Shown piece by piece: positions 13,099 through 59,604 of a DNA stretch of 64,000 nucleotides (position 1 is its first letter; each line of letters opens with the position of its first letter). The stretch is taken from positions 62,001-126,000 of the IMG/VR virus record IMGVR_UViG_3300027969_000039; one strand, written 5' to 3'. Below the pieces are notes generated by a model. That model ran no database searches. It had not been told where the DNA came from and saw only the letters and a list, made by a program, of their open reading frames with translations. Position numbers and translations under genes: made by a program.

Positions 13099-14840
13099 AC
13101 TTTAAAGAATTACACGAAGGCGCAGAGCCAAATATGCCTGGTGCCCCTAGTGGCATCAAGATTATGACACCTCAGCAGTTCGTTGCTAGTGCAGGTGATT
13201 CAAAATCTGATGAAGAGGTATCAGAAGGCGGTAATGCATTCATGCCAGGCATACAAAATACGGCAGAATACAAAGCAGGTTTTGCAACAGGCAAGTTACC
13301 AGTTCCATATCCTGAAGGTACACAACAATATGCTAGCTATTACAAAGGAGTGATTGATAAGTCTACCCCTAATTTAAATAAAGGTACAGCAGGAAATTCG
13401 TTGACTGAATTTGCCCCTAGTGATGACGGTGATGATGGATTTAGTGAAGAAACACTAAAAGGTCTTGCAGCGCAATGGTGGAATGGTGATGAAGATCCTC
13501 GTGTAGAAAAATTATTGATGGCTGCAGGTTGGGAGATTGGTCAAGATGATGGGTATGACAACGGTGGTGTGTTTGTGGTGCGAGCCGGTGATGACAGTGG
13601 TCATAGTTATCTCAGTTGGCCAGCAGAAGAACTAAATCCTAATTTATCAGAAACACATTTAAATAGAATTCGTAGCTTATCTGGATTAGTTGAAGCAACT
13701 AAACTACCAGCACAAACTCGTGATTTGGATAGTCAAGAATTTCAAGACTATATGAAGCGTATCGTTGGTACACCTGATTTAGACAAAGAAGGTAATGTTA
13801 AAGTAGATAAAAAAGGTAACGAAAAGTATACTACTGGCAAGACCAAAGGTGACAAATACAAGATGCCTTACATCCATCGTAGTAGTGTAGTTACATACTT
13901 AAGCCCAGATGGTAAAACATATGATGAAGATGCAGTTAAACAAACATTAGCAATTCGTCCTAAATCATTATTAAAGCAAAATGAAAAGATGAAACATAGC
14001 AATGGTGAGTTTGAACAATTCTTCAATGTTGGATTTGCAGCATTAGTAGGAATTGCATTAGATGAACAAACTAATAAATTAATCATTGTTAATACTTGTC
14101 CAGGCGCTGGCTCTTGTAAAGTAGAGTGCTTTGCTATGAAAGGCGGCAAGATTCAATTCAAGGCTGCATGGCAAAGTGACGGAAGAATACTAACATATCT
14201 ATTAAATGATCCTGATGGTTTCTTCAATCAACTAAGTAGTGAAATATCTGCTGAGGCACAAGCAGCAGCAAAGGGTGATAAGAAATTCCCTAATGGTTGG
14301 CAAACAACAGTTCGCTGGCATGATGCTGGTGACTTCTTTAGTCCAGAATATTTAGACATGGCATTGAAGATGGCTGCTAAACATCCTGATGTTAAGTTCT
14401 ATGCTTATACTAAAATGGCTGGAGCAGCATTAGCGGATAAGCCAGACAACTTCATTATCAATTGGAGTGAAGGTGCTAACACTGCACAAGAGAAACAAAT
14501 CAAAGCACAAGATCCTAAGTTAGATAAAACAAAGAACAGTCGCATCGTTCCAGAGAAACTATTCTATGACTTATTGGCTAAGGACGAGAAGGGCAATTTA
14601 GCAAAGACTCCAGATGGTGCATGGCAACCTGCAGGGCCGCAAGAATTACAACAAATGAAACAGCGTATTGCAACAGAATACGGTATTAGTGCTAACTCTA
14701 TTTTGAGTTATACTGAGTACATGGCTAAGAGAAATTCAATCCCAGCTGGAATGAAGTACAATGTTATTGTTGCACCAGGTGAAGGTGATGTTAGTGCTAA
14801 CGACCCAGGCGTACTAAGTACCTTATTGCTAAGACATTAA
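13095..14840 (+). CDS. modular protein with C-terminal Gp88-like (Cys-cluster) domain
   Basis: MNFKELHEG leader; short modules; then CPGAGSCKVECFA, RWHDAGDF and FYAYTK motifs. Confidence 0.65.
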   Translation: MNFKELHEGAEPNMPGAPSGIKIMTPQQFVASAGDSKSDEEVSEGGNAFMPGIQNTAEYKAGFATGKLPVPYPEGTQQYASYYKGVIDKSTPNLNKGTAGNSLTEFAPSDDGDDGFSEETLKGLAAQWWNGDEDPRVEKLLMAAGWEIGQDDGYDNGGVFVVRAGDDSGHSYLSWPAEELNPNLSETHLNRIRSLSGLVEATKLPAQTRDLDSQEFQDYMKRIVGTPDLDKEGNVKVDKKGNEKYTTGKTKGDKYKMPYIHRSSVVTYLSPDGKTYDEDAVKQTLAIRPKSLLKQNEKMKHSNGEFEQFFNVGFAALVGIALDEQTNKLIIVNTCPGAGSCKVECFAMKGGKIQFKAAWQSDGRILTYLLNDPDGFFNQLSSEISAEAQAAAKGDKKFPNGWQTTVRWHDAGDFFSPEYLDMALKMAAKHPDVKFYAYTKMAGAALADKPDNFIINWSEGANTAQEKQIKAQDPKLDKTKNSRIVPEKLFYDLLAKDEKGNLAKTPDGAWQPAGPQELQQMKQRIATEYGISANSILSYTEYMAKRNSIPAGMKYNVIVAPGEGDVSANDPGVLSTLLLRH

Positions 14841-33570: not shown

Positions 33571-34104
33571 ATGACAGTCAATCAAATTTTATTAAACCAA
33601 TACTTTGGTACCATTTGGCATCAAAATAGCGATCCTTCCAAGAAGGATACTAAATCAGGGAAACAATTAATAGACAAAATTAATCCCGGTGAATCAGTAC
33701 TAGATGTAGGGTGTGGAACTAATCCTTTTAAAGGAATCATTCCCAATCTAACTGGAATTGATCCGGCTTTTGACCAAGCAGATCACAAGATATCAATTGA
33801 TGATTTTGAAACTAGTGAGAAATATGATGTTGCACTATGTCTGGGTAGTATAAATTTTGGAGGTAGTAGTGACATTGAGAGACAAATTGCCAAAGTCATT
33901 TCATTAATGAAACCAAATGGGAGAATATATTGGCGTTGCAATCCAGGAAGACAAGATCACCCTAGTGATGAATGCAAAAATGTGCCTTTTTATGCATGGT
34001 CTATACAAGAGCATGAGAGACTAACTGCTATGTTTGAAGCACGACTGATTGAATGTTGTTGGGAAGATAATGGTCGTAGAATATACGCTGAATGGAATCT
34101 TTAA
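33571..34104 (+). CDS. class I SAM-dependent methyltransferase
   Basis: VLDVGCG, GID and YDVALCLGSINF motifs. Confidence 0.8.
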   Translation: MTVNQILLNQYFGTIWHQNSDPSKKDTKSGKQLIDKINPGESVLDVGCGTNPFKGIIPNLTGIDPAFDQADHKISIDDFETSEKYDVALCLGSINFGGSSDIERQIAKVISLMKPNGRIYWRCNPGRQDHPSDECKNVPFYAWSIQEHERLTAMFEARLIECCWEDNGRRIYAEWNL

Positions 34105-34913
34105 TCGTCACTCTTACCACACTTAGCACGTTTAGCTTGTGTGAGTTTGCCGAAGTCAACTGGCCATTCTTGGCCTGGTTGTAATTCTTTAGCCCCTTGA
34201 GGGAATCCAAACTTTACACCTGAGGCTTGTTCAATCTGTGTTATAGGTAAACGAAACTTAGTTAAATCATTTCCTAAATTAGGATATGGAACAACATGTG
34301 GGAAACTCCATCCTGCTACTTCTTTAGTTTGATTGTTAATTACTATTTTATAGAAGCCATGTGGAACGATTACTCCATTGCCAATCTTCTTATCAGAAGT
34401 GGAATATAATGCTCCAACATATACGGTATATGATTGGTTCCGTTGAACTGACCATCCACGGACAGATGTTTCCAGTAATTTCCAGATTCCACGATTTAAT
34501 GAGCCAGCCTGGGGCGCCATGTTTGTCATTAAAAAACTCTCAAATTCTACTTGCGTATCCCAAGACAAATCTCCATCAGGAGCCATATGTCCTTTATCGT
34601 AATTAGTTCCAATATAATCATCAGGTCTAGCACCATTAGAAATATACTGATTAGCGGCAAAAGCATTAGTACGAGCCACACAACCCAGTGCATTTTGCGG
34701 AAGTAGTTCATAAGTTACAAACCTTGGTAGTTTTGCAGATGCATCATAACCAACTAGATATGCTTGTTGGCATAGTGGCTGAACACCTTGTGTTTGAGGG
34801 AATCCGTATGGTGCATGTACTTGGCATTGTTGAACTGAATTTGGGGGACGTTGTGTCCAAGCAGATACGGTGAATGAAGCAGTGACTAATAATAGTGATA
34901 TTATTTTTTTCAT
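34101..34913 (-). CDS. secreted DNA/RNA non-specific endonuclease (NucA/EndoG-like)
   Basis: signal peptide; YDKGHMAP, TNMAPQ..LNRGIW..LE and VPHGFYKIV. Confidence 0.9.
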   Translation of the reverse strand: MKKIISLLLVTASFTVSAWTQRPPNSVQQCQVHAPYGFPQTQGVQPLCQQAYLVGYDASAKLPRFVTYELLPQNALGCVARTNAFAANQYISNGARPDDYIGTNYDKGHMAPDGDLSWDTQVEFESFLMTNMAPQAGSLNRGIWKLLETSVRGWSVQRNQSYTVYVGALYSTSDKKIGNGVIVPHGFYKIVINNQTKEVAGWSFPHVVPYPNLGNDLTKFRLPITQIEQASGVKFGFPQGAKELQPGQEWPVDFGKLTQAKRAKCGKSDD

Positions 34914-34914
34914 A

Positions 34915-35355
34915 TTACGCTCGGGCTTTCTTTAGAGTACTACGAATCATCCATTGATGTTTTTCGTGAGCATCTAGCCTCTCAGCGATAAAGTTTGCTA
35001 TACCTTGTTTGTTTTCTTGTGTAGCTGAAGCAAAGCAATGGTTGAGTAAATCAATCATCTTACTGTTATCTTCGAATAATTCAGCAAACATTAATTCAGC
35101 ACGAGGAATTTTAAGTTGGTCTTGAATGATAGATAATTCAGCGTAGCGTGTTAAACTGCCGGGTGCATAACTATCCAATGTACGAATGTATTCAGCAACT
35201 TTATCTACTGCACTATATACTTCTTCATAGAAATTACCAAAGAATTCGTGATATTCAGGGAAGTCAGGTCCTTCAACATTCCAATGAAAGTTCTGTGCTT
35301 TGATGGATAGTGAATTAACGCTAGCCAATAATACTTTTAAATCTTCTGCTAACAT
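34915..35355 (-). CDS. dps: Dps ferritin-like protein
   Basis: FHWNVEG..F...HEFF..FYEE...VD.VAEYIR; HEKHQWM. Confidence 0.9.
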   Translation of the reverse strand: MLAEDLKVLLASVNSLSIKAQNFHWNVEGPDFPEYHEFFGNFYEEVYSAVDKVAEYIRTLDSYAPGSLTRYAELSIIQDQLKIPRAELMFAELFEDNSKMIDLLNHCFASATQENKQGIANFIAERLDAHEKHQWMIRSTLKKARA

Positions 35356-37367
35356 TATTGCTGTCCTTGTTGTTGTAGTAACTGTTTTGCCTTTTCTACA
35401 CTAAGCATTGGGCGAGGATGTGATCCATCTATAATACTTTGTAGATATTCTGCACTATAACCACTTGGTGCTTTTGCTGCTGGTTGTTCATCTGATGGTG
35501 CTACTTGAGTAGCAACTGGTTTACCAGTTAAACGATTAATACCAGGATCTTGATCTGGTAGTACACGACCGTGTGCGGCACCGCCTAATGCCATAGCACC
35601 TGCTAATGCTGCACTACCTAATGCGCTTTTCCAGCCTTCATCTACTTGGTGTACACCTGAAAGTATTGCTGATTCTTTTATTGGTACACAGTTATTAACT
35701 CTAGTATCACCCTTCATCTTAGTGCCTTGTTTTTTATAACCAGTCCAGCATTTAGGATCCATACGTTGTTTTTCTTCATCCATAGTTTGATTACCACTAG
35801 CTTGATCAATTCTGCGTTGTAAGTTAGCTTGCTCATCCGGGGTTGGAGCACCTGGATTACCTCCTGACACTCTTAAGTTTGCAGGTTTTGGTTGTTTTGC
35901 ATTACTTGGTGCTGCTGCTTGTTGACTTTGTTGTGCTAATTTACTAAATTCTTTAGCACCATAACTTACTGCCGCAGTTCTATTTCTTCTCTTTAAACTA
36001 TTTAATCCATCTAGTACATCATCTATTGCATCTTTAGCATCATCGACCGTTCTAAAAGATGATGGTCCAGATGATGGTGCGGCTGCTTGCCCTGCACCAC
36101 CTGATGCTGCACCAGCTGATGGTGCGTATCCTCTACCGCCACTTGCTGCTGACATGCCTGAACCTATTCTACTAGCTGGTACATTACTAGTTGTAGCTGC
36201 ATTGCTTGTAGTTTGTGGTGCTGATGCTCTGGTTTCAGGATTGACTTCACCAGTGTGACCCACATGTTGCATAGCTTGATTGGCTCTTGATGCGTCATAA
36301 CCTGTCATTTTACCGCCACCGTATGCATCTTTCATTCCGGCATATGTTCCTTTTACACTACCAATTGCATCACCTACCCCACCCGCCATACGACCCAATA
36401 ATCCTTGTTTGGGTTGTGCCGGCTGAACCGGTAACGGCTTTGCAGCAGGAAGTTTAAAGTTAGTAAATAAATTATTCAATGTCTCCTGTGGTACACCTGC
36501 TTTAATCATAATATCTGCAATTTGATCACTATCGGTTGGCTTATTTGCTTTATTCCATGCTTGCAATAATTTGTCAGCAGTAATCTTTGTTGTTAAGTTT
36601 TGCCCTTTGGTTTTAGCCCAATCTAGTATACCTTCATCAACTTGTTTTTTATGCTCATTAACTATTCTACCAATTAATCTATAAATTTGTGATTCAGATA
36701 GTTCAAATGATTCATTTCTCATTTGTAGACCATTGACTTCACCCGGCTTAGCAGGAACTCTTTTTGGTGCTATCGCTGATAGTGCAGAAGTAGCCGTAGT
36801 TGGTGGTTTAGGTTGTACTCTAGGAAATTTACTAAAATCACCTGTATCTGTTCTTGTACCATCTGATGGACGACCAACAAGTTCTGTACCTTTGTTTAAT
36901 GCAGCAGTTGCAGCAGCTTGTCTTTGTTGTCTTGCTGCTTGTGCAGCTTGTCCTGCAGGAGTAGTTGGTTCTTCTGCTGCTGAAACTGATGGATCTGCAC
37001 TTGTTGATTGTTTTAATCCTGAAGCTGCAACTGGATTAGGAGTGCTAAACATATCTTTAACTTTGCCAATTGCTGTTCTATTGTTGCCGCCACCTACTAA
37101 GTTAGCAGCACCACCTGCTGATTGAATCTCTTGTGCGCTTTTGAAAATTTGTTGAATTTGTTGAGGGTCAACTGCAACTCCTTCTTTAATTTTTTTTGCA
37201 TCATTATCAAATTGTTTTTTAGTAGCAGTATTGATACCTTTAAAACGTTTGTCGCCTTTTTTGAAGTCACCTTCACTATCAGCTTTGCTAGCATTAGCCG
37301 CAGCAGCAGTTTTGTATTTTGCCAACTTGTCGTTAGATAGTTCTGCTAAAAATTCATTGGTTCTCAT
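35355..37367 (-). CDS. modular putative internal-head polyprotein
   Basis: MRTNEFLAE leader; Ala/Gly-rich linkers; joints IKEG, VDEG and MDEE; CWTGYKK...NCVP module. Confidence 0.7.
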   Translation of the reverse strand: MRTNEFLAELSNDKLAKYKTAAAANASKADSEGDFKKGDKRFKGINTATKKQFDNDAKKIKEGVAVDPQQIQQIFKSAQEIQSAGGAANLVGGGNNRTAIGKVKDMFSTPNPVAASGLKQSTSADPSVSAAEEPTTPAGQAAQAARQQRQAAATAALNKGTELVGRPSDGTRTDTGDFSKFPRVQPKPPTTATSALSAIAPKRVPAKPGEVNGLQMRNESFELSESQIYRLIGRIVNEHKKQVDEGILDWAKTKGQNLTTKITADKLLQAWNKANKPTDSDQIADIMIKAGVPQETLNNLFTNFKLPAAKPLPVQPAQPKQGLLGRMAGGVGDAIGSVKGTYAGMKDAYGGGKMTGYDASRANQAMQHVGHTGEVNPETRASAPQTTSNAATTSNVPASRIGSGMSAASGGRGYAPSAGAASGGAGQAAAPSSGPSSFRTVDDAKDAIDDVLDGLNSLKRRNRTAAVSYGAKEFSKLAQQSQQAAAPSNAKQPKPANLRVSGGNPGAPTPDEQANLQRRIDQASGNQTMDEEKQRMDPKCWTGYKKQGTKMKGDTRVNNCVPIKESAILSGVHQVDEGWKSALGSAALAGAMALGGAAHGRVLPDQDPGINRLTGKPVATQVAPSDEQPAAKAPSGYSAEYLQSIIDGSHPRPMLSVEKAKQLLQQQGQQ

Positions 37368-37369
37368 AA

Positions 37370-39475
37370 TTATGCTTTCTTATTTTTGATAGATTTTTTG
37401 CTTTCGTATGCTATAGAAGCACCGGGTCTAGAAGAAGATGTATATCCTCTATCTTGTAATCTTGCTGGTTCATCACCAGTAGCTGAATATGGAGTGTTAC
37501 TTAGATTGTTTGAATCATGTTGTCTCTGATATTCTTGGTTAGATGCATCCATTTCATCTTTACTAACTAATGGAGGTTGAACATCTGCACGATGTAATTT
37601 GAAATTATAAAACTTGATACCTTTTGATTTCATAAAATCTTTAACTGCTTCTGAAGCCTGTCCCGGGGAGTTATATTCTGTTCCAAGATTGATATCTTTT
37701 GTAATTGATTTACCATCTACTTGAAAAGTAATTTGAGCAACAATAGGTTGTATTTCATGTGCATGTGCTCCTGCCCCGCCCAATGCAGCAGCACCTGCTA
37801 GTGCAGCACCTGCTAAATTACTTTTCCAACCTTCTTCTACTTTTTTCTTAGCAGCATCCCATGCAGCATCAGTCTTTACATTGTATTCTTTGCCACCAGC
37901 GCCAATGTCAGCAACTCTGCTACCAATATCTTTTTTAGTTTTTACAACAGCTTTATTGTGTTTGTTCACACTCTTTTGCATTAATTTACCGAAGTCTGGA
38001 TTGCGTTTAAGGGCCCGTTCATCTTCTGGACTTCTTGAACTTGCTGCTGCTGTTCTCAAATCACCTAAGTCAAATGCTTCCCTCATTCCTGCTACTTTGC
38101 TACCTTGAGTGTTAGCTGCGGTACCGGTACGGCTGGCTTTCATCTTATCTCCACCGCCACCAATGTGTCTACTACCATAATCGGTCTTGTCTGCCTTGCG
38201 TGGCTTTTTATATGGTAATTGTTGAACATTACCACCTTTACTTAAAAATGCTTGTAATGCAGAATCATCTTCCGCTACACCTTCAGCACTATCAGTAGCT
38301 AATACATCTGCAACTGTGCCAATATGATCGTTTGCTACTGTGATATAACTGTATTCCCATGCATCTAATTGATTACCTTGCTTCAACATCTGATGTATCT
38401 GCTTGCAATTCTTTGCAATATTACGCAACTCTCCCATAGCCATTTGTGGAATCTGTTCTCCACCATCACTATCTTCGTATGCAAGTCCACCGGCGATAAC
38501 ACCAGCACCTTCCGTTACCCCTTGCTCTGCTTGATCCATGTACCATTTAAGAATTTTTAGTAATTCAGTAAGTGATTCTTGCCCTTCAGGATTACAGTAG
38601 TTCTTAGCCATTCTAGCTAAGTCGTACATTGTTCGTAAGTTGCTGGTGCTTACATCACCTTCATTCATACCTATCTTACGCATCACCGCTGGAGAAGCGA
38701 TTTTTTTTATCGCTTCTTTTTTTCCTACTTGTGCTGCCCTATTGCTTATTTTTTGTGATACATCATCATAATGTTTTGCCAATGGATTCATATAGCCGCC
38801 ACCTAATGCATTATGCACCTCAGGCTTCATTGCTTGATTACTTTTGTTTTTAGCTAATTGTGCGGATCTTTGTAACAGATCAGAACTGAGTTCATTGATA
38901 GCATCACTATCAGGTTGCATCTCTTGACTGCTGATTAGATAATCCATCACATTAACCATCATACCTTTTGCTGCGCCAATCTTCTCTGATACCCACTCGG
39001 GGAATTCAGATTGAACGGATAATCTCTTATCTAAATCACTAGCAGCACGGGCGATAGTGTGTAGACTGTTCTTTAATGTGTGACCTTCGTGTTCACCATG
39101 GTCTAAGTCATGCTTAACAAATCCAGTTCTTCTTAGTCTACCTTGACCCGGGATAACGATTAAGTCTTGTTCTGCAATTTCCTCTTCGTTGACTTTTGTC
39201 ATGCTTGCTTTGATTTCAGCTTTTGTTTTTCCATATTTCTTTTGAAATTCAGCAGTAGTTAACTCTGTTAAATCTATTGATAGTTCTTTAACTTTGCTTT
39301 CTGTAATGCTATTAGCGTAAGGCCCTTTCTTTTTAGCCTTCCCTTTCATTACTTGTTGTACAGGTTTCAGTCCCGGAACATTAACATTTTCACGGGTTTG
39401 AGTCATCATAGGCTTTGCTACGGTTGCGACTGACCCTGCTGTGGTTGAATTTTCTACTATTTGCTTAAATCTCAT
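37370..39475 (-). CDS. modular putative internal-head polyprotein
   Basis: MRFKQIVE leader; joints QGVTEG, EGVAED, INEL, MNEG and VEEG; ATAAATA upstream (39505-39499). Confidence 0.7.
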   Translation of the reverse strand: MRFKQIVENSTTAGSVATVAKPMMTQTRENVNVPGLKPVQQVMKGKAKKKGPYANSITESKVKELSIDLTELTTAEFQKKYGKTKAEIKASMTKVNEEEIAEQDLIVIPGQGRLRRTGFVKHDLDHGEHEGHTLKNSLHTIARAASDLDKRLSVQSEFPEWVSEKIGAAKGMMVNVMDYLISSQEMQPDSDAINELSSDLLQRSAQLAKNKSNQAMKPEVHNALGGGYMNPLAKHYDDVSQKISNRAAQVGKKEAIKKIASPAVMRKIGMNEGDVSTSNLRTMYDLARMAKNYCNPEGQESLTELLKILKWYMDQAEQGVTEGAGVIAGGLAYEDSDGGEQIPQMAMGELRNIAKNCKQIHQMLKQGNQLDAWEYSYITVANDHIGTVADVLATDSAEGVAEDDSALQAFLSKGGNVQQLPYKKPRKADKTDYGSRHIGGGGDKMKASRTGTAANTQGSKVAGMREAFDLGDLRTAAASSRSPEDERALKRNPDFGKLMQKSVNKHNKAVVKTKKDIGSRVADIGAGGKEYNVKTDAAWDAAKKKVEEGWKSNLAGAALAGAAALGGAGAHAHEIQPIVAQITFQVDGKSITKDINLGTEYNSPGQASEAVKDFMKSKGIKFYNFKLHRADVQPPLVSKDEMDASNQEYQRQHDSNNLSNTPYSATGDEPARLQDRGYTSSSRPGASIAYESKKSIKNKKA

Positions 39476-39528
39476 GACGGTTTCCCAAAGTTATAGAGTA
39501 TTTATCAAAATACCATAATAAGGAAACT

Positions 39529-40935
39529 TTAGATTTTGCCGTTTGCTTTAGCTGTTGGGGGTATTCCAGCACGACTGGTGTTCCAGTAGAATGCTTTTGC
39601 GTTCTTTTTTATACTGTCAGGGTGTACATCTACAGTTAGTGCTGTCTTGAATCGCGGGTCATTCTTTTGTTTTTCGCTTGGAATATATCCACTTGCTTCA
39701 CTTATTCCACCACGATATTGATTATCTTTAACGCCAGCATAAGGACTTACTGGTGGAGTTTTTTCTGCTGCAAATTGCATGGTGTTGTATTCTTCCGCCA
39801 CACCTTTTACTTTTGGATCTAAATCTTTCAAGCTATTCACATCACCTTGCTTGCGCCACTTTGACCACATTTTTTGTCCAGCGGTAGTTTGTGTTTCAGA
39901 AGGCAATACATTGACACCTAACATGCGAATCAAAGCATACATATTTGCGGCTATACCTTGTCCTTGATATTTAGGATCGACTCTGGTCTTCATGCTTGTT
40001 ACACCTTGCACTTCACCTGTATATAGATTTCGTGCTTTGGCAAATTGTGCATCTCCAATTGGATTGAGATTTTTTTTATCATATGCTTTGATAGATAAGA
40101 AATCATTTTTCTTCCCTGCATTTGTAACATGATAAAGTATTCCGTTTATGTCTTGTTTGAAATCTAATCCTGGTTTCCATAACTCATTGTTGAATTGTTC
40201 TTCTTCATCTATGTTCTGATACATAGTCTCAAACGATAACTTCTCACTATGTAACTTGTCTCTTAAATCATATAATTTTGTAATATATCCTTGACTACGC
40301 AACATCTTATATGCTAAATTTTCAGGACCAAACTCACCACCTTTATCTAATCCTGCTTGTCTATATCGTTTGATCGTGTCTATTATATGTTTTACTTTAC
40401 TATATTTTCTTGACTGTAGTGCTATCTCTATCAAACCTAATAACTTTTCATACTTGCTTTTAGTAGAAGTTTGGTCAAAATCACTTCTACGCTTAGTGGG
40501 TATTCTTATCCACTGATCATTCATTACACTGTATTCACCTAAACTTACAACAGGTTGTCTACTGTCTTGTACATATAATTCTACTGGAATTTTATGAATT
40601 GTTATATCATGTGTATCATTGTATATTGTTTTCTTTGCTGTAAATAACTCTTTATATACTTCATTGGTAGGTAAATTACCCATGTCTACTAATATATGTA
40701 AATCTAAATCACTGTGCTTTGTGTAGCTAAATGCAGCATTACTACCTGAGATTGTTATGTCTTTTACATCTAAATCATGTACACCTAATTCTTCTAAAAA
40801 ATCTGCTGCTATCAGCATAAGCTGGTCTCTAACATCTGGTCGCAATTTAGTTTCATTCCATAACTTAGGATTAAGTTTATCGTGGAATGTTACCGCATCA
40901 CTTAGTTTAAAGCTATTAAGTTCTTTTTGATTCAT
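39529..40935 (-). CDS. Pol-beta-family nucleotidyltransferase fused to a GNAT module
   Basis: GSNAAFSYTKHSDLDLH (GS..DxD) and VELYVQD; VDPKYQGQGIA (GNAT motif A) followed by KGVAEE. Confidence 0.8.
   Translation of the reverse strand: MNQKELNSFKLSDAVTFHDKLNPKLWNETKLRPDVRDQLMLIAADFLEELGVHDLDVKDITISGSNAAFSYTKHSDLDLHILVDMGNLPTNEVYKELFTAKKTIYNDTHDITIHKIPVELYVQDSRQPVVSLGEYSVMNDQWIRIPTKRRSDFDQTSTKSKYEKLLGLIEIALQSRKYSKVKHIIDTIKRYRQAGLDKGGEFGPENLAYKMLRSQGYITKLYDLRDKLHSEKLSFETMYQNIDEEEQFNNELWKPGLDFKQDINGILYHVTNAGKKNDFLSIKAYDKKNLNPIGDAQFAKARNLYTGEVQGVTSMKTRVDPKYQGQGIAANMYALIRMLGVNVLPSETQTTAGQKMWSKWRKQGDVNSLKDLDPKVKGVAEEYNTMQFAAEKTPPVSPYAGVKDNQYRGGISEASGYIPSEKQKNDPRFKTALTVDVHPDSIKKNAKAFYWNTSRAGIPPTAKANGKI
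39793..39804 (-). repeat. exact copy of the GGTGTGGCGGAA repeat
   Basis: + strand TTCCGCCACACC; variants at 38270-38281 (GGTGTAGCGGAA) and 38510-38521 (GGGGTAACGGAA). Confidence 0.9.
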
Positions 40936-40997
40936 TTTTTTGGGTCAGGTGGAACGGGAGGGAATTTCTTTGGAGTTTTATGTCTAAACCAACTCAT
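40932..40997 (-). CDS. 21-aa Pro/Lys-rich leader ORF (not in ORF track)
   Basis: MSWFRHKTPKKFPPVPPDPKK*; ATG 5 nt after ATAAATA; stop overlaps the NTase ATG. Confidence 0.4.
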   Translation of the reverse strand: MSWFRHKTPKKFPPVPPDPKK

Positions 40998-41016
40998 ATA
41001 TGTATTTATTACTATA

Positions 41017-41553
41017 TTATAAATCTAGTATTTGACGAGGTAACCAAAGTTCATATATATTTTTATCGATCGGAGTATCTACGCATTTAGATAAAGATTC
41101 AACTGCTTTTCCGTCAATAATATCTTCTAAAGATATTAAATTTTTGACTTGTGTATTAACAAATTCAGAATATTTGATTATATTTTTTGCATATTCTTCT
41201 GTAGAATTGAAACCTATATCATTTTTATACCAATCTTTATGCTGGTTAAGTTTGCTAAATCTACCTGCTGCCCATAATGCAATTTTAAAATCAAAGGTTA
41301 TTATAGATATAATTTTATGTTTTTTTTCAATATGATATTCCATTTGATGACTTGGCAAACTTAGATATTTATTTTTCATGTTATTAATGTAAATATCTTT
41401 TTCTTGGTCTGTTTTAAATAATATAGGACATTTTAATTTGTCTCTTTCATCTTGAATTACTATATAATCATTTTCTAAAATAACGCCGGTTGGATCAATC
41501 ATCGCGGTAATTAAATCCCCGCAGCATCCACCCATAAAAGAAACAATATTCAT
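41017..41553 (-). CDS. AT-rich hypothetical protein (possibly sulfotransferase/kinase-like fold)
   Basis: VSFMGGCCGDLI N-terminus; visibly lower GC than its flanks. Confidence 0.55.
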   Translation of the reverse strand: MNIVSFMGGCCGDLITAMIDPTGVILENDYIVIQDERDKLKCPILFKTDQEKDIYINNMKNKYLSLPSHQMEYHIEKKHKIISIITFDFKIALWAAGRFSKLNQHKDWYKNDIGFNSTEEYAKNIIKYSEFVNTQVKNLISLEDIIDGKAVESLSKCVDTPIDKNIYELWLPRQILDL

Positions 41554-42570: not shown

Positions 42571-44289
42571 TTATTTTTCGTCTAGGTAATCAAATTTAGG
42601 TTCAACAGGTAATCCGTCGCTACGCTCACGCTTTTTCATTTGTTCGCTGTCTCGTGCGGCTCTTAGTTTAGCGATAGGTGCCCCATCACCTGCTAAGTCT
42701 TTTGCCACATGAGCCATAACATCACTTTCTTTTTCCATTACAGTTGCTATACCAACACCAACGCCTAAGCTAGCTAGTGTATATTTGAGTGTGTCTACCC
42801 AATTCTTGCCGTTCATTCTTGCACCCACTGCAGGGACGATTGAGTTCAATATACCTTGCATCATTAGATTAGTTTGATAGGGTGTTAGTTGTATATTATT
42901 AGCAAGATTTATTGCGCCACCGCCTAGTAGTGCTGCTATAGCTGTAATGATTCCACCTTGTAAGTATGGATTGTGTTTACCTTCTTTAAATATATCAATC
43001 AACTTTTTGCGAACAACTGGGTCATCAGTCTTTTGTAATAAGTGTCGTGCTTTCTCTACATAGTTTTCTACTTCTTGTTCTTGTGCTTTTTGCATTACAG
43101 GTGTATAGAACTTCATAGTAGCATCAACTATTGGATCAGTTTCTTTATCTTCTTCAATAGGTTCAGTAGTAGCACCCATCTTCATTTTTTCTTGCACCGG
43201 CATTGCCTTCTTAACTTTTTTAGTATTGTACACTCCAAATTCTCCACCACCGTTGGTTTGGCTTGTCCAACCTGGTAATGACGGTAATACTCTTTTAATC
43301 ATTCTAGCATACAACGCTCTACGACCGGGTTCTGCGGCTTGGAAATATAACAATGAAGGTTTAAATTTTTTCACATACTGAACTATAGCATTGACTACAA
43401 TTCCAAACACTTCTGCGGCTGCCCCTGTACCTTCGATACCCTGTTTAACAACTGGAAATCCGCCTTTCATATCCTGTGTAATTTGTTCAAAACTAACAAA
43501 TTTGCTATTTTCATATACTTCGTCTGAATCAACATAATCATATGGACTCATGTTCTCTGGTCCAATATATGGTTCTAAGAAATCCAATTGATATTCTACT
43601 CCATTGCTAGCAGTGAAGTTAAATTTAATCATATCAGGATTACTAGTGTCCCATTGTGAAGTAGCTGTAGATGCTTTAGTATCAAAAACTTCTTGTAAAT
43701 TAACATCAACACCCATGCCAGCATCTAATAGCTTAACGACATTTGCTGCTAATGCGGGGTTACTTTGTGTAGCTGGATACAAACTCATTACCATTGCAGT
43801 CTTGCGTTTCTCGTTTAGTTTAGGCCACATTGCACGAATCTCACTTGCACTGGTAATGCCAGGACCAAACTCTACTGTTGGTAGATATTCAATGTAAGCA
43901 TGTTGTCCAAATGGTTTTAAATCTTTGCCTGTGTATGGTTGAAAGTATGCAGGACTTCCATCTTTCTTTGTGCCACCTGGTTTAGGTTGCTCATTCTTAT
44001 CTTTTTCACTACGCACAAATATTAATACATCACTGTCAGGATTATACTTGCTTGTTATTTCTTGTGGTCTGAATGGACTACGAACTTGTACAAATTGTCC
44101 TTTCTTTACACCTGCTACTTTAGCAAGTTTTTCTTTGATTGCAAAAGGAAAAGGTCTTTCACTAGTATCGTCTGATGCCGCAACATATACATCAGCACCC
44201 GGAAAGGTTTGTAATGCTGATTGATATAGTGAGGCATGACCCGCATGAAACGGGTGAAAGCCTCCGGGCATTACGACTATTGTACTCAT
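42571..44289 (-). CDS. HxGH nucleotidyltransferase fused to additional modules
   Basis: PGGFHPFHAGH, VRSEKD and SASEIR; then a domain shared with 58507-59604 and a hydrophobic module. Confidence 0.7.
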   Translation of the reverse strand: MSTIVVMPGGFHPFHAGHASLYQSALQTFPGADVYVAASDDTSERPFPFAIKEKLAKVAGVKKGQFVQVRSPFRPQEITSKYNPDSDVLIFVRSEKDKNEQPKPGGTKKDGSPAYFQPYTGKDLKPFGQHAYIEYLPTVEFGPGITSASEIRAMWPKLNEKRKTAMVMSLYPATQSNPALAANVVKLLDAGMGVDVNLQEVFDTKASTATSQWDTSNPDMIKFNFTASNGVEYQLDFLEPYIGPENMSPYDYVDSDEVYENSKFVSFEQITQDMKGGFPVVKQGIEGTGAAAEVFGIVVNAIVQYVKKFKPSLLYFQAAEPGRRALYARMIKRVLPSLPGWTSQTNGGGEFGVYNTKKVKKAMPVQEKMKMGATTEPIEEDKETDPIVDATMKFYTPVMQKAQEQEVENYVEKARHLLQKTDDPVVRKKLIDIFKEGKHNPYLQGGIITAIAALLGGGAINLANNIQLTPYQTNLMMQGILNSIVPAVGARMNGKNWVDTLKYTLASLGVGVGIATVMEKESDVMAHVAKDLAGDGAPIAKLRAARDSEQMKKRERSDGLPVEPKFDYLDEK

Positions 44290-45293: not shown

Positions 45294-46022
45294 TCAGACA
45301 GGTACGGGTCGCTTTTCTAATTTATAGCGTTTTCCAAGCATATGTCCATACATTAATATCAAATAGCTTAGTGTACTTTCATTGTCATAGTCAATAGAAT
45401 GATTTCCGCTAGTATAGCGATATTGCCAACTATTAATTGAAGCAATTGGGCGTCTAATATAGTCATTTAACCATATTTTCAATGCATTACTTGGAACCAA
45501 TTCTTTACTTTTCTTGATGGTATCGTGCAAATCTTTAATAAAATCTCTTTCTTCAATATACTTAGATTTTAAATAAATTCTATACTTGTGCTTTGGCTCA
45601 TTGACATAATACTTTGTACCAGCAAACTGCTCCAATTGCACTTCTGTGATTTTTACGGTAACTAGTCCAAGATCCTTCAATGTAAGCAACAAATCTAAAT
45701 TGTTGCTGTACACTGACATAGTATCCATCTCAAGTCTGAAAGTTACTAATCCGGGATTTTTGTTACTGTTACGCCAATCAATGAAGTTATTAAGTTCATT
45801 GATTTTCTCCATCGTTACTGCTTTTCTATCTGCTCGTACCTTGCGATATCCGGTCTCATTCAATCTCCTAATCAACTCACCCGGAGATTTAACATAATTA
45901 GTGAATGCTAATCCATCGATAGTAAATTTAGCCCGATATCTATAGTTGTTGTAATAATTAGTTTCCTTATATTCATAAAAATCAATATTAGGAATGTTTT
46001 CAACTGACCTCAATAATCCCAT
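45294..46022 (-). CDS. hypothetical protein
   Basis: 242-aa ORF overlapping the end of clpA. Confidence 0.7.
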   Translation of the reverse strand: MGLLRSVENIPNIDFYEYKETNYYNNYRYRAKFTIDGLAFTNYVKSPGELIRRLNETGYRKVRADRKAVTMEKINELNNFIDWRNSNKNPGLVTFRLEMDTMSVYSNNLDLLLTLKDLGLVTVKITEVQLEQFAGTKYYVNEPKHKYRIYLKSKYIEERDFIKDLHDTIKKSKELVPSNALKIWLNDYIRRPIASINSWQYRYTSGNHSIDYDNESTLSYLILMYGHMLGKRYKLEKRPVPV

Positions 46023-48261
46023 CTTCGTTCACCTTGGCTGTTAGTTTATGTGTTACTGCAAAATCAATTGCACCTTCGTTCATCACTACATTGATTGTAG
46101 CAGATTTAATACGTTCAAACAAGACTTTTTTACTTAGAGGTACCCGAATCAATTCATCAATCTTGCGACTTAATGGTCGTGCGCCCATCTTCTTATCGTA
46201 TCCTTGCTCTGCCAAATACTCAACTACTGGTTCACTTAGATTCAATACAATATCATGCTTGTCAACCAAACTCTTTTTCAAGTCATCGGTAAACTTGATA
46301 ACAATCTTCTTAATCGCAAGTGTATCCAATTTGTTAAACTTGCAAATCAAGTCAACACGATTTCTAAACTCGGGCTTGAAGAATTCTTTCAATGCTTTGT
46401 CATCTTCACCGGTCTTCTCTTGTGTGCCGAAGCCGATGTTGTTGCGTTCGCTATCACTACTACCTAAATTACTGGTCATGATAATGATACTGTTCTTACA
46501 GTTAACTTGCTTACCATTACTTCCAGTGATATGACCTTCGTCCAACATCTGCAAGAAGATGTTAAAGATATCTGGATGTGCTTTCTCAACTTCATCAAAC
46601 AACATGATCGAATGTGGGTTCTTGCTCAAGTCATTGATCAATCGTCCACCTGACACTTGACTATCACCAAACCCAACATAACCCGGGGGAGGTCCAATCA
46701 AACTACTTACGCTATGTTTTTCTGAGTATTCGCTCATGTCATACTTAAGCAACGGCATGTCTAAATTCTTGCTTAGTAGTTTAGCAAGTTCAGTCTTACC
46801 GGTACCAGTTGGTCCCAAGAACAAGAAACTACCTGTTGGCTTAGTGTCATTACCAATACCAGCAAAGTTAACATAGACTCGCTCAAGTACCTGTTGTACA
46901 GTTTCATCTTGTCCGTATAGTTTGTCTTTGATGTTTGATTCTAAATTTTGAATCAATTCAAAGTTATCACCCTTCATTTTATCAGCAGGTACTCCAGTGA
47001 ATCGTTCAACTTGGTCAAACACAAGTTCTTTAGTAATGATTGCACCTTTGTTTTCTGCTACACGCTGTTTAGCACAAGCAGCATCAAGCAAATCAATAGA
47101 TTTATCTGGGTTCTTACGGTCATGAATATAGCGGTCAGCACTTTCAACTGCTGCTTTGATTGCCTCATCAGTAATTTCAACATTGTGAAAATCATTTAGT
47201 CTAAGACTCAATCCATTAAGAATGCGAATTGTTGTATCGTGGTTAGGTTCATCAACTGAGATACGATAGAACCTACGCATCAACGCACGGTCCTTCTCAA
47301 AGCTATCATAGTATTCTTCCCATGTTGTACTAGCAATAACTTTAAGAGTACCTTTAGTAATTGCAGGTTTAATCATGTTACTGAAATCAACCGACCCATT
47401 GTTAGCACCACCTGCGCCTTGCATAGTATGTGCCTCGTCAATAAAAAGAATAGTCTTTTTCTTTGTGTTCAATGCCTCAAGTACTTGCTTAACCTTTTCC
47501 TCAAAGTCACCGCGATACTTACTACCTGCAAGTAGTGACCCAATCTCTAAACTGTATAGTTGATGGTCTTGCAAGAATTCAGGCACTTCTTTATTAATCA
47601 TCATCTGTGCTAGACCTTCAGCAATTGCTGTTTTACCAACACCAGGATCACCGACCATCAATACATTACTCTTAAACCGTTTAGCAAGTACGTTAATGAT
47701 ATCATCAAGTTCTTTGCTACGACCAATCAATGGCTCAAGTTTACCTTGTGCTGCTAGTTGTGTCAGGTTGATTGTGTATTCTTCTAGTATCTCATCAGCT
47801 TGGTTCTCTGTTAGATTTCCAGTCTCACCATGCTTATAATGTTTTTGCCAATGTGATACAAATTCGTTTTTGTTAATTCCGTATTTCAACAAGAAATAAT
47901 GTGCATGGCTATTGCCTTCTGACGCAATGCTTAAGTATAAGTCAACAGTAGTAACCTGTCTACGACCACTAAACAATACTTGTGTGACGCAACGATTCAT
48001 AACACGCTCTAAACTATTTGTTTTGCGTGGAACTACATCGTCATCTTTGCTTACGATAGCATGTAAACTATCTAAGTATGCATTAATCTCTTGATCCATT
48101 GTTTCAACGTCTGCACCAAAACTATGCAAACATTTTTTGAATGAATTATGATTTATCAGTCCAAGTAGTAAATGTTCCACGGTTACATATTGATGTTTTC
48201 TTTCTTTAGCATAATGAATCGCTTGTTCAATAATACTATCTATTTCGGGTGAATGGTTCAT
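46000..48261 (-). CDS. clpA: ClpA-like Hsp100 AAA+ chaperone
   Basis: Clp N-domain (EHLLL); GDPGVGKT and GPTGTGKT Walker A motifs; IGF ClpP-docking loop. Confidence 0.92.
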
Positions 48262-49061
48262 TTTTGATTCCTTTGTTGTTTGTATGCTGCAATAGTATTT
48301 ACTAATTGTTCGTCTATGATATCAGGTATGAATGGCTTAAACAATATAATTTGGTCTCCGTAAACTGTTGAGTTAGGTATAGGCATCCCATGCCCTGCTA
48401 ATTTTAATTGCATATATGGTTGTGTTTTTGGTTTAACTGTAACCTCTAATGTCTTTCCAGACAATGTTGTGAATTCAAAAGTTGTTCCAACAATTAAATC
48501 TAATACTGATATCGGGTGATTACATGATAAATCATTACCTTGTCTATCATATTTAAGATGGTTCTCCACTCTGAAATCTACCATTAAACTAGCACCATCT
48601 ATGACATTATCAATACGCATCTGATTGCCGTTGTTAATTCCTTTAGGTACTTGGATAGTAATAGCATGAGTGTTAGTGGGTGTTTGTAATTTTAATATTT
48701 GCTCTCCACCATAATATGCTTGTTCAAGTGTGATTCCTACTGTGGTTCTAAATGTTTGTGGTTGTTTGCGCTGTTGGCTAAACGGGTCAAACGGGTTGCC
48801 TCCGCCAAACATCTGACTAAAGATATGTTCAAACCCTGGGGGAACACCAGCTTGCTGATGAAATCCTTGGGGAGCAGGATTGTCGTATTGTTGTCGTTTG
48901 TTTGTATCGCTTAGTGTATCATAAGCGGCTTGAATATCTTGGAATTTAGCCTTGTCTCCGCCCTTGTCAGGATGATGCTGACTGGCTAGTTTCCTATATG
49001 CTTTTTTAATTTCGTCAGGTGATGCGTTTTTAGCTACACCTAATGTAGTATAATGATCCAT
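48258..49061 (-). CDS. dnaJ: type II DnaJ/CbpA-like co-chaperone
   Basis: J-domain with HPD; G/F-rich linker; no zinc finger. Confidence 0.88.
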
Positions 49062-58506: not shown

Positions 58507-59604
58507 TTATGATGTTCCTTCGCTAAACCACGGATCAATGATAACCGGTTGTCCGTTACTTCGTTGCATGACATTTGCCGTATGCAAATCCCATCCAAAT
58601 TTATTGATATTTCCTGTACTATATAATAACTGCATCACAGTATATAGCTGTTTATACATACTGTAAGTTTTTTTACTTGCAGGATTTTCTAGTATACTTT
58701 GCCATGTTCTAGCAAAAGTACCAGAATAGTTTGGACTAAAAAAATACCACGGGTGTCCATTTGTTAATTCGCTTTCCACAGTTGACCATGGTTTATTTCC
58801 ACTAACATAATCACTTAATAACCAAACCATACCTTGTAAGAAACCACCTTTTTCTATAGGGGATAATCTCTCCATCTCAATCTGAGTGTAGTCTTTGCCA
58901 TTGATATCGATGGTGTTCACTTCATTGAATCTAGGAACGCATGGTAAATCTTGATGACTCATTGAAAACTCATAAAACTTACGAAATACTTGTTCAGCTT
59001 TGCTACCCGCATCCTCTGGCATCAATATCTTGATCACATGACTATCATCTTTGGCAAAAACAGTAGCATCAGCACCGCTGCCAACATGATGATATCCAGC
59101 CGCTCTTAGTTGTTTCCAAATCTCATTGCTATTCTTAGTAGCTACTTCAGCTTCATCCAAATTATCTTTGACAATCTTGAAGTAGTCATCATACTCACCT
59201 GAATCAATAGGTGCCGCATGGTAACCGGGTACTTTGATTCTATTCAACATACGCTGGTATAATTTAGTTCTATTGTCATCTGCTTTGTGTGAAGTGAATG
59301 TAAGTTGATCAGGATGATAGCTAGAAATCAAATCTTTGATTGACTCAATGACAAATGAGAATACTTGTAATTCATTACCAGAACCAGTCTTTCTAAAAGT
59401 TGTACCAGTTCCGTCCTTTTCATATTCAGTAAAGTCTATTTCCCATACTGATTTACCTTCATCATCGTCATACTGTGAAGCATTAAAAACAATAACACGA
59501 CCACCTATCGTAGCCTTAGTGGTGTATAAGTCTGGAGTTGCTCTAACTACTTCACTAGAGACATTGCTAGTAAATACTTCGGTTATAAATTCTGTGGCTC
59601 TCAT
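58507..59604 (-). CDS. leader + unknown domain + protein kinase-like domain
   Basis: MRATEFITE leader; [20 protein letters not shown] and IIDP kinase motifs. Confidence 0.8.

Follow-up and report, generated by a model that had tools for sequence, protein, structure and literature searches.

A putative polyprotein of exchangeable enzyme modules in a large T4-like freshwater phage

Organization of the locus

The gene under study lies within a 64,000-nucleotide stretch of viral DNA, hereafter the window, corresponding to positions 62,001 to 126,000 of IMG/VR record IMGVR_UViG_3300027969_000039, and belongs to the 303-kb genome of a T4-like jumbo phage from freshwater. A single open reading frame with an ATG start, read without an alternative genetic code, encodes a protein of 468 amino acids on the minus strand, and the identical protein occurs on 8 contigs of up to 363 kb. 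From front to rear, the protein consists of a Pol-beta-type nucleotidyltransferase module (NT), a small GNAT-type acetyltransferase module (GNAT1), both as judged from predicted folds, and two short peptides, T1 and T2 (Table 1). A megablast search of the region against GenBank phages returned no match.

An earlier first-pass annotation, made from the sequence alone and without a stated strand, had described this gene as a nucleotidyltransferase scaffold carrying an inserted GNAT acetyltransferase, followed by short tail modules. That observation is confirmed, as each of the motifs on which it rested is present: G64-S65 and D76-L-D78, 'NIDEEE' at residues 241-246, 'VDPKYQGQGIA' at residues 319-329, 'KGVAEE' at residues 377-382, and a tail of 87 residues. 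The description of the GNAT as inserted is likewise accurate, since the minimal natural form of the protein, at 302 amino acids, consists of NT joined directly to T2, and the GNAT is one of many alternative inserts.

Table 1. Features of the locus and its neighbors, in positions of the window.
Position	Strand	Feature	Remarks
39529..40935	-	Whole gene, 468 aa	NT - GNAT1 - T1 - T2
40204..40935	-	Module NT, residues 1-244	Pol-beta-type nucleotidyltransferase with a helical C-lobe; constant front module
40702..40746	-	NTase catalytic motif G64-S65 ... D76-L-D78	Third carboxylate, E119, at 40579-40581
40204..40212	-	Junction 1, I242-D-E244 | E245	Predicted prohead-protease site between NT and GNAT1; contigs from other samples diverge at 40201/40220
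39793..40203	-	Module GNAT1, residues 245-381	Small GNAT-fold acetyltransferase (predicted); variable cargo
39949..39966	-	GNAT motif A, Q324-G-Q-G-I-A329	Q/R-x-x-G-x-G/A, the acetyl-CoA pyrophosphate loop
39793..39801	-	Junction 2, V379-A-E381 | E382	Predicted protease site between GNAT1 and T1; loose ends of foreign contigs at 39783
39697..39792	-	Module T1, residues 382-413	Optional 32-aa peptide, predicted disordered
39697..39705	-	Junction 3, I411-S-E413 | A414	Predicted protease site between T1 and T2; loose ends at 39690-39704
39532..39696	-	Module T2, residues 414-468	Highly conserved basic 55-aa peptide (10 K+R against 4 D+E); constant rear module
41002..41009	-	ATAAATAC promoter-like motif	66 nt upstream of the start codon
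37370..39475	-	Downstream neighbor o701	Capsid-targeting-like leader 'MRFKQIVE|N'; own ATAAATAC at 39498-39505; conserved only in its N-terminal part
35355..37367	-	Neighbor o670	Leader 'MRTNEFLAE|L', resembling the T4 internal-protein capsid-targeting sequence
42571..44289	-	Upstream neighbor o572	Cytidylyltransferase-like N-domain, then a DUF6934-like module also used as cargo in NT..T2 proteins; C-terminal part variable

Predicted folds of the two enzyme modules

By sequence alone, assignment of either domain is weak. Specifically, Pfam returned only sub-threshold matches for NT (NTP_transf_2, 13.9 bits against a cut-off of 21) and for GNAT1 (Acetyltransf_CG, 12.2-14.3 bits against 30; Acetyltransf_7, 13.9 bits against 27), sequence searches of the PDB with the single protein or with an NT profile gave nothing significant (DrrA scored E 0.42, at the GS..DxD stretch only), and a search of NCBIfam returned only an unrelated MerG model at 13.5 bits against a cut-off of 350. 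A MAFFT alignment of the whole protein built from partial rows misplaced the NT rows (24% apparent identity), and the two halves were consequently aligned and folded separately.

At the level of fold, both assignments hold. The AF2 model of NT has a pLDDT of 79.9, and its Foldseek matches are all Pol-beta NTases, including CdnE (6wt9, the best, at E 3e-4), AAD(9), ANT(4'), AadA, LinB, FAM46 and MiD51. These matches are consistent but modest: VIA structural alignment of the N-lobe covers 100-117 residues at Z 4.6-5.5, while VIA alignment of NT against all PDB representatives was uninformative, the list being filled by the helical C-lobe matching unrelated helical bundles. The residues G64, S65, D76, D78 and E119 are invariant in 68 homologues, and the motif is also retained in distant standalone homologues from cyanophages and Maribacter phages. 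Although CdnE is the best Foldseek match, membership of the CD-NTases of CBASS (cGAS/DncV-like) is not supported, as TM is 0.17-0.25 and VIA Z is 4.6-4.7, and the neighbors are phage genes with no CBASS effector among them.

Similarly, all 50 of the best PDB chains matching the GNAT1 model are acetyl-CoA acetyltransferases, among them KAT6A (Z 9.7, rmsd 3.2 A, 111 residues aligned), ESCO1 (Z 9.1), HAT1 (Z 9.0) and AAC(2')-Ia (Z 8.7), covering model residues 12-129, and a profile of the module matches the GNAT 2atr at E 2.2e-4. Within and beside motif A, residues Y323, G327, I328 and A329 are invariant in the alignment of this module. Confidence in the model is only moderate (pLDDT 65-78) and the alignment is shallow, as a word search for the module found only 12 near-identical copies, with close copies in only about 10 protein clusters.

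The NT module is a member of the phage family phrog_36119 (E 1.7e-42), and is 31-39% identical over about 230 residues to standalone proteins of cyanophage DSL-LC02, Maribacter phages Molly and Colly, and Lak megaphages that share the same GS, DxD and E. Those proteins stop at the end of the NT domain (about 250-265 aa) and have no T2, no cargo and no junction motif. Look-alikes of NT in the Atlas are viral clusters of about 240-250 aa in which 10-22% of members carry NTP_transf_2 (PF01909).

Exchange of modules among homologues

More than 3,000 homologues keep NT in front and nearly all keep T2 behind, while the modules between them vary and include GNATs, a cytidine/dCMP deaminase module, DUF6934, DUF6886, DUF5661, ART-like and unknown modules. 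The 120 closest homologues fall into 57 architectures, all of the form NT-[cargo]n-T1-[cargo]0-1-T2; a further 1,533 shorter homologues include the minimal form, in which the junction 'ISE|ASGYIP' joins NT directly to T2. Relatives carry up to about ten modules and reach 1,566 aa. The homologues do exchange the GNAT for other modules, and the NTase does not group with housekeeping CCA/poly(A) enzymes, two points that the first-pass annotation had set as tests of its own reading and that come out in its favor.

In 80 IMG/VR loci, every 5'-complete T2-bearing ORF starts with NT, which initially suggested that T2 occurs only with NT; a profile search rejected this idea, as T2 also follows short capsid-targeting-like leaders without NT in other phages. 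In total, 584 representative clusters hold T2. The peptide belongs to no known family, T1 (present in many but not all homologues) belongs to no Pfam or PHROG family, and pLDDT over T1 is below 40. No paralogues of T1 or T2 were found in the genome; one weak T2-like stretch lies at positions 298777-298914 of the genome sequence G000 (E 0.056). T2 has 20 invariant columns in 32 sequences, and its pN is half that of NT at equal pS; because synonymous divergence in T2 is as high as in NT, conservation at the DNA level and recent recombination are rejected as explanations of its conservation. Complex prediction of NT with T2 gave a score of 0.00, which is neither for nor against binding.

Consistent with exchange in natural populations, comparison of 1,701 bases with contigs from independent lake metagenomes showed that many contigs cover NT and T2 but only one covers the GNAT, depth over this stretch falling to one contig per metagenome. 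The contigs diverge within about 17 nt of the three junctions, most within 10 nt.

A junction motif resembling head-protease sites

Of 129 distinct module-end contexts, P1 is E in 119 and D in 9, the latter mostly followed directly by E, while one end departs altogether; P3 is V/I/M/L in 128. Background frequencies are 5.8% for E and 21.9% for V/I/L/M. P2 varies freely, which argues for selection on the protein rather than DNA microhomology. This [V/I/M/L]-x-E pattern is the site type of T4-like prohead proteases, and the head proteases of T4-type and giant phages all cut after Glu in an X-x-E motif (PMC5694885). In support of this site type, module interiors are mildly depleted of the motif (18 observed against 26.3 expected, P about 0.04). 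The motif is nevertheless short and is tolerated within folded domains, three copies lying inside NT.

The same genome encodes a protease of the T4 gp21 family (PF03420, Peptidase_S77; 98.9 bits, E 4e-29; G000 233261-233704, in the ORF at G000 233207-233842) beside a portal-like ORF, a scaffold-like ORF and a Gp23 capsid gene. The motif is concentrated in the other expected substrates of such a protease: the scaffold-like protein has 26 [VILM]xE sites in 366 aa, against a genome average of 1.37 per 100 aa, and the capsid protein has 4 of its 5 sites within its first 43 residues.

Promoter-like motif and genomic context

The ATAAATAC motif upstream of the gene occurs in 30 copies in the genome, of which 23 lie in the 5.6% that is intergenic and 22 lie within 100 nt upstream of a same-strand gene. 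The annotated genes behind it encode baseplate wedge, tail-fibre, head and other virion structural proteins. Its assignment as a late promoter rests on motif placement only, and the related canonical T4 late box TATAAATA is not enriched, with 15 copies against about 50 expected on both strands and only 3 upstream of genes.

The neighbors o670 and o701, together with five more ORFs in the genome, begin with 'MRxxEF[IL]xE', which resembles the T4 capsid-targeting sequence MKTYQEFIAE (PMC8442874). In contrast, the N-terminus of NT itself, 'MNQKELNSF' (family consensus 'MNLKELxSF'), resembles such a leader only in part, having no [VIL]xE at positions 6-10 and no cleavable Glu. In addition, the gene lies about 10 kb from the DNA polymerase and about 130 kb from the head cluster, and the standalone NT homologues of cyanophages lie among replication genes rather than head genes, indicating that NT is not intrinsically a virion protein.

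Interpretation

Taken together, these data suggest, with moderate confidence, that the gene encodes a late-made polyprotein that would enter the prohead and be cut there by the phage's own gp21-type protease after E244, E381 and E413, releasing a free nucleotidyltransferase, a free GNAT acetyltransferase, T1 and the basic T2. In this view, the products would stay in the head and enter the host with the DNA, acting on host targets before any phage gene is expressed, in parallel with T4 Alt and the T4 internal proteins, and the locus would behave across the phage population as a cassette array in which enzymes are exchanged at protease-site junctions between a constant front and a constant rear. 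What the analysis itself establishes are the two folds with their intact catalytic motifs, the combinatorial architectures, the junction motif, the protease gene and the distribution of the motif in scaffold and capsid propeptide, the promoter-like motif, and the neighboring genes with targeting-like leaders; packaging, cleavage, ejection, substrates and any host-modifying or counter-defence role are inferred, in the absence of virion proteome or cleavage data for this phage, the evidence for packaging being only indirect and consisting of the promoter motif, the junction sites and the neighboring leader-bearing genes.

The first-pass annotation had inferred a late-expressed protein- or nucleotide-modifying effector, possibly acting in counter-defence through signal decoys, AMPylation or acetylation. 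This interpretation is supported only in part: both domain assignments, the idea of a scaffold with inserts and, by way of the promoter-like motif, late expression are supported, whereas a counter-defence role, decoy function, AMPylation or a particular substrate is not shown. The annotation also missed the prohead-protease-type sites at the module boundaries and the surrounding cluster of genes with T4 capsid-targeting-like leaders, in light of which the product is more likely a capsid-packaged polyprotein cut into separate pieces than one multidomain enzyme.

Alternative readings are each considered unlikely, though to varying degrees. The least unlikely is that NT, GNAT and tail work as one uncleaved chain in the cytoplasm during infection, with nothing packaged and with the [VILM]xE junctions serving as a favored flexible linker or representing a footprint of cassette recombination. 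Such a reading is consistent with the replication-gene setting of the standalone homologues, the distance from the head cluster, the lack of a cleavable leader, and the predicted disorder of T1 and T2, as linkers often are; however, it explains neither the hydrophobic P3 and Glu P1 at 128 and 119 of 129 junctions alongside a free P2, nor the accumulation of the same motif in scaffold and capsid propeptide, nor the stronger purifying selection on the 55-aa T2 than on the enzyme, nor the structural-gene promoter motif and the targeting-like leaders nearby. Less likely still is a polyprotein that is cleaved but not delivered, the pieces acting late in the producing cell or inside the head, for example by modifying phage DNA or virion proteins or by condensing DNA. 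The basic character of T2, like that of the DNA-associated T4 internal proteins, the presence among the cargo of a deaminase that could act on nucleotides or DNA, and the late promoter-like motif are compatible with this view, but hypervariable, strain-specific cargo is expected of arms-race effectors rather than of assembly functions, which are usually conserved, and T4 head-internal enzymes with such domains, such as Alt, are ejected (PMC5512222).

Very unlikely is a bifunctional small-molecule or antibiotic-modifying enzyme, that is, an ANT-like adenylyltransferase fused to an AAC-like acetyltransferase as in bifunctional aminoglycoside-resistance enzymes. The fold matches do include AadA, ANT(4'), AAD(9) and LinB for NT and AAC(2')-Ia and AAC(3)-Ib for the GNAT, and one cyanophage homologue is annotated 'aminoglycoside nucleotidyltransferase'. 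Yet no NCBIfam model of any kind scored near its cut-off, identities to the fold matches are 10-16% with weak scores, and replacement of the GNAT by deaminase, ART-like, DUF6934 and other modules in sister phages means that the pairing of NT and GNAT is not a conserved functional unit.

Relation to described systems

Searches of the literature for this architecture and for DUF6934 turned up nothing specific in the collection consulted. A close parallel is found in the polyvalent proteins of phages and conjugative elements (Iyer, Burroughs, Anand, de Souza, Aravind 2017; PMC5512222), in which several unrelated effector-type domains, with a repertoire that includes Pol-beta NTase, GNAT and ART, share one polypeptide predicted to be packaged, delivered with the DNA, and released as separate domains by proteolysis. 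The domain repertoire of the present family (Pol-beta NTase, GNAT, ART-like, deaminase) matches that of these predicted capsid-delivered proteins, in support of the proposed reading. The polyvalent proteins usually, though not universally, carry an embedded peptidase (zincin-like MPTase), whereas no peptidase family was found in this protein or in the 18 cargo modules scanned, and the boundaries instead carry the site type of a separately encoded T4-type head protease. Furthermore, their NTase family is a minimal version from firmicute conjugative elements, while the present one is a 244-aa two-lobed NTase found in large phages, and fixed front and rear brackets with free cargo exchange are not described there.

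The T4 internal proteins IPI-III and gpAlt are capsid-targeted, gp21-processed and ejected, and Alt, an ART, is an enzyme delivered in this way (PMC5512222). The present phage has a T4-type head module, hydrophobic-x-E sites at the predicted processing points, a hyperplastic locus that differs between related phages, and neighboring genes with leaders like the T4 sequence. T4 internal proteins, however, are single-domain proteins cut once, next to a 10-residue N-terminal leader (PMC8442874), while here up to about ten modules are strung together, each ending in a site, and the chain starts with a whole enzyme; there is no sequence similarity to IPI-III or Alt. The giant phages phiKZ, 201phi2-1 and SPN3US likewise package many proteins processed after Glu in an X-x-E motif by a T4-related prohead protease (PMC5694885), but those proteases prefer small residues (S/A/G or A) at P3, their substrates lose propeptides rather than being split into strings of independent enzyme modules, and no homology was detected. 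Finally, in the MuF-domain polymorphic toxins of temperate phages a constant head-associated part, the MuF head-morphogenesis domain, is fused to one C-terminal toxin that differs between strains; MuF fusions are mentioned in passing in PMC5512222. Here, a Pfam scan found no MuF domain, cargo modules are multiple and internal, and a conserved C-terminal peptide closes the chain.

Implications

A broader reading, held only tentatively and judged slightly less likely than not, is that T4-like jumbo phages of lakes may carry a combinatorial array of effector cassettes, in which virion-delivered polyproteins are built from dozens of interchangeable enzyme modules, each ending in a head-protease site such that any shuffled combination is automatically cut into working parts inside the capsid. 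T2 would then be a new, near-universal capsid-internal peptide, serving as a packaging tag, an ejection tag or a DNA-binding peptide, and the module catalogue would be a ready-made list of injected host-takeover or counter-defence enzymes.

If the proposed reading is right, it shows a simple way for a phage to evolve its injected arsenal: any enzyme module that ends in the head-protease site can be dropped between a fixed front and a fixed rear, and will be packaged, released and delivered without further adaptation. The junction motif gives, in that case, a sequence rule for finding injected proteins in uncultured T4-like phages, and the clusters that carry T2 would provide a catalogue of candidate host-modifying enzymes, comprising GNATs, NTases, a deaminase, ART-like modules and several unknown domains such as DUF6934, DUF6886 and DUF5661, to which the catalogue would give a testable biological context.

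Genomic setting

A single ORF encoding 468 aa occupies the locus, and all of the motifs that the first-pass annotation had reported within it are present, with their coordinates confirmed by translation, such that the observation itself holds. The accompanying interpretation, in which the product was envisaged as a late-expressed modifying effector with a possible role in counter-defence, is partly supported. The window comprises bases 62001-126000 of a single 303,057-bp virus record (designated G000), estimated to be 86% complete, and has a GC content of about 38%. Encoded near the gene are a family-B DNA polymerase, a full-length ClpB/ClpA-like double AAA+ chaperone (753 aa; phrog_4871 at E 3e-237), a Dps/ferritin-like protein and a non-specific DNA/RNA endonuclease, the latter two lying directly downstream of the variable genes, while a T4-type head cluster composed of a portal-like ORF, a Peptidase_S77 prohead protease, a scaffold-like ORF and a Gp23-family capsid protein is located elsewhere in the record. 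The record is therefore that of a T4-like jumbo phage, the DNA of which occurs in freshwater and lake metagenomes from many studies.

Coordinates of the modules, predicted sites and neighboring features (nucleotide positions are those of the window unless G000 is indicated)
Feature	Position	Strand	Remarks
Whole ORF	39529-40935	-	468 aa
NT module	residues 1-244		predicted site IDE244|E at its end
GNAT1 module	residues 245-381		predicted site VAE381|E at its end
T1 peptide	residues 382-413		predicted site ISE413|A at its end
T2 peptide	residues 414-468
Contig divergence points	40201/40220; 39783; 39690-39704		contigs of other lake metagenomes
ATAAATAC of the gene	41002-41009		at -66
ATAAATAC of o701	39498-39505		at -22
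Leader of the gene	40936-41001		66 nt
Metatranscriptome contigs (run X23)	39485-39783 and 40732-41023		on T2/T1 and on the 5' end of NT
o701, downstream neighbor	37370-39475	-	begins 'MRFKQIVE'
o670, downstream neighbor	35355-37367	-	begins 'MRTNEFLAE'
Further ORFs with targeting-like leaders	10841-12523; 13095-14840	+
Further ORF with targeting-like leader	58507-59604	-
Further ORFs with targeting-like leaders	G000 47949-48326 and 48323-48715	-	outside the window
o572	42571-44289	-
ClpB/ClpA-like chaperone	46000-48261	-
Dps/ferritin-like protein and non-specific DNA/RNA endonuclease	34101-35355	-
Scaffold-like protein and Gp23-type capsid protein	G000 233855-234955 and 234982-236178		outside the window

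Predicted enzyme domains

Scans of domain libraries alone provide only weak support for the two enzyme domains: Pfam yields sub-threshold matches to NTP_transf_2 and Acetyltransf_CG, PHROGs places residues 15-232 in phrog_36119, a family of unknown function, and NCBIfam returns nothing relevant. Structure prediction is more informative. Specifically, the N-terminal module (NT), when folded with 68 homologues, gave a model with a pLDDT of 79.9, for which Foldseek returned only Pol-beta-fold nucleotidyltransferases with a helical second lobe, namely CdnE, AAD(9), ANT(4'), AadA, LinB, FAM46 and MiD51 (best E 3e-4), while structural alignment with VIA-align gave Z scores of 4.6-5.5 over 100-117 residues of the N-lobe. 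Consistent with this assignment, G64, S65, D76, D78 and E119 are invariant and persist in distant standalone homologues, and look-alike clusters in the ESM Atlas are viral proteins of about 240-250 aa, of which 10-22% of members carry PF01909. The Pol-beta nucleotidyltransferase call is therefore accepted, without assignment to a subfamily or substrate.

The second module, GNAT1, is predicted to fold with moderate confidence (pLDDT 65-78). All 50 of the best PDB chains matched by the model are acetyl-CoA acetyltransferases, with Z scores of up to 9.7, a profile of the module matches the GNAT 2atr at E 2.2e-4, and motif A, Q-x-x-G-x-A, is present and conserved. The two C-terminal peptides, T1 and T2, are predicted to be disordered, and match no Pfam, PHROG or Atlas cluster.

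A combinatorial architecture

A word search identified 1,992 relatives of the whole protein and 1,533 of the NT part. Upon dissection with a library of 17 modules, the 120 closest relatives were found to fall into 57 architectures, all of the form NT-[cargo]n-T1-[cargo]0-1-T2. Cargo modules include three or four GNAT types, a cytidine/dCMP deaminase (PF00383), DUF6934, DUF6886 and DUF5661, modules with an ART/Tpt1-like 'YH.T' signature, and several modules for which no match was found. The commonest short forms are NT-T2 (302 aa) and NT-T1-T2. In some relatives (loci L074, L071 and L051-L054; proteins P0273, P0278 and P0292) T2 is internal and is followed by a further 119-440 residues, and the longest family members reach about 1,450-1,566 aa. 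In contrast, the combination found here, NT-GNAT1-T1-T2, is rare: close copies of GNAT1 occur in only about ten protein clusters, and the combination is shared by three of the 80 IMG/VR loci, these being near-identical genomes.

The locus is syntenic across relatives. The upstream gene o309 is 83-98% identical, whereas o572, o701 and o670 are conserved only in their N-terminal parts, and the Dps-like gene is conserved in many related loci. The gene o572 combines a cytidylyltransferase-like N-domain (PF01467) with a DUF6934-like module and a hydrophobic segment, and only its first 190 or so residues are conserved in related phages. The genes o670 and o701 share a motif, 'EEGWKS', followed by a Gly/Ala-rich hydrophobic stretch, and o670 additionally contains a 'CW.GY...G.K..G...V.NCVP' motif that matches several PHROGs of unknown function; as the homology of o670 and o701 to relatives breaks near [VIL]xE sites, these proteins may be polyproteins too. 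In other lake metagenomes many contigs cover NT and T1/T2 but only one covers GNAT1, and the points at which contigs diverge lie within about 17 nt of the three module junctions, most within 10 nt. Contigs from a freshwater metatranscriptome library also lie on the gene, at under 90% to 99% likeness and mostly below 95%; these come from relatives, and DNA carry-over cannot be excluded.

Module junctions resemble head-protease sites

Across 129 distinct module-end contexts, the last residue is Glu in 119 and Asp in nine, the Asp being mostly followed directly by Glu, while one end departs altogether. The residue two positions before the last is V (64), I (48), M (11) or L (5) in 128 contexts, the middle residue varies freely, and the residue that follows is small or acidic. 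The corresponding background frequencies are 5.8% for Glu and 21.9% for V/I/L/M. Prohead proteases of T4 and of the giant phages all cut after Glu in an X-x-E motif (PMC5694885). T4 gp21 prefers Leu or Ile at the first position.

The genome encodes such a protease, and its expected substrates display the motif where it should be. The scaffold-like protein contains 26 [VILM]xE sites in 366 aa, about five times the genome average, and the Gp23-type capsid protein has four of its five sites ('LLE', 'LLE', 'ILE' and 'LAE|S') in its first 43 residues, before the conserved Gp23 core begins. Module interiors, by comparison, are mildly depleted of the motif, with 18 sites observed against 26.3 expected (P about 0.04).

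Putative late promoter and neighboring leaders

The motif ATAAATAC occurs 30 times in the genome, with 23 copies in the 5.6% that is intergenic and 22 copies within 100 nt upstream of a same-strand gene. The annotated genes behind it encode baseplate wedge subunits, tail fibres and virion structural proteins. The portal-like gene carries the variant CTAAATAC, as does the gene for a 1,141-aa protein taken to be a tape measure on its position and its Gly-rich, coiled-coil make-up alone. The canonical T4 box TATAAATA is not enriched. Both the gene and o701 carry ATAAATAC. The motif is read as probably the late promoter of this phage, a relative of the T4 late box, although this is an inference from placement. 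The leader between this promoter-like motif and the ATG of the gene contains a C-rich stretch ('CCCTCCCGTTCCACCTGACCC') and no Shine-Dalgarno sequence, whereas the head genes have clear ones.

Seven ORFs of the genome, including both downstream neighbors, begin with a leader of the type 'MRxxEF[IL]xE' (one starts 'MNFKELHE'), and are thus candidate internal head proteins; the 365-aa member of this set also holds a DUF6934-like module. The T4 internal proteins are targeted to the prohead by the leader MKTYQEFIAE, which these leaders resemble, and are cut once next to it (PMC8442874). The gene therefore lies in what looks like an internal-protein locus, a region that in T-even phages is highly diverse, with only the leader conserved (PMC3012670).

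The conserved C-terminal peptide T2

T2 is the most conserved part of the protein. Of its 55 columns, 20 are invariant, and its non-synonymous divergence is half that of NT at equal and near-saturated synonymous divergence, such that the constraint acts on the peptide and not on the DNA. The peptide is basic, with 10 K+R against 4 D+E. A profile search of 1.84 billion representatives found T2 in 584 clusters, 318 of them at E 1e-10 or better, within proteins that reach 1,566 aa and in which T2 usually sits at the very C-terminus. About half of the 145 proteins examined carry NT and many of the remainder are fragments; twelve, however, begin with a targeting-like leader, followed either directly by T2 or by a cargo module and then T2. 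T2 is therefore a general component of these leader-bearing proteins and not a private tail of the nucleotidyltransferase. A test for docking of T2 on NT returned no verdict, and T2 may conceivably serve as a packaging tag, an ejection tag or a DNA-binding internal peptide.

Proposed mechanism and relationship to described systems

It is proposed that the gene is transcribed late, that the polyprotein enters the prohead core and is cut at the three junctions by the gp21-type protease, and that the nucleotidyltransferase, the GNAT and the two peptides would then remain in the head and enter the next host with the DNA. What the analysis itself establishes is the two predicted folds with their intact motifs, the combinatorial architectures, the junction motif and its distribution in the scaffold-like and capsid proteins, the presence of the protease gene, the promoter-like motif and the neighboring leaders, whereas packaging, cleavage, ejection and any activity upon host targets are inferred. 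The main weakness of the proposal is that NT has no cleavable leader; in addition, standalone NT homologues in cyanophages lie among replication genes.

The closest described concept is the 'polyvalent protein' of phages and conjugative elements, which has the same domain types and the same predicted delivery and proteolytic release (PMC5512222). The protein described here differs from these in that there is no embedded peptidase, in that the junctions match a separately encoded T4-type head protease, and in that a fixed front and a fixed rear bracket freely exchanged cargo. With the T4 internal proteins and Alt, the protease type and the neighboring leaders are shared, but the string-of-modules design is not. 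No description of this architecture was found in the literature searched, which was limited in extent. Although no target is known, the strain-to-strain turnover of cargo fits an arms-race function.
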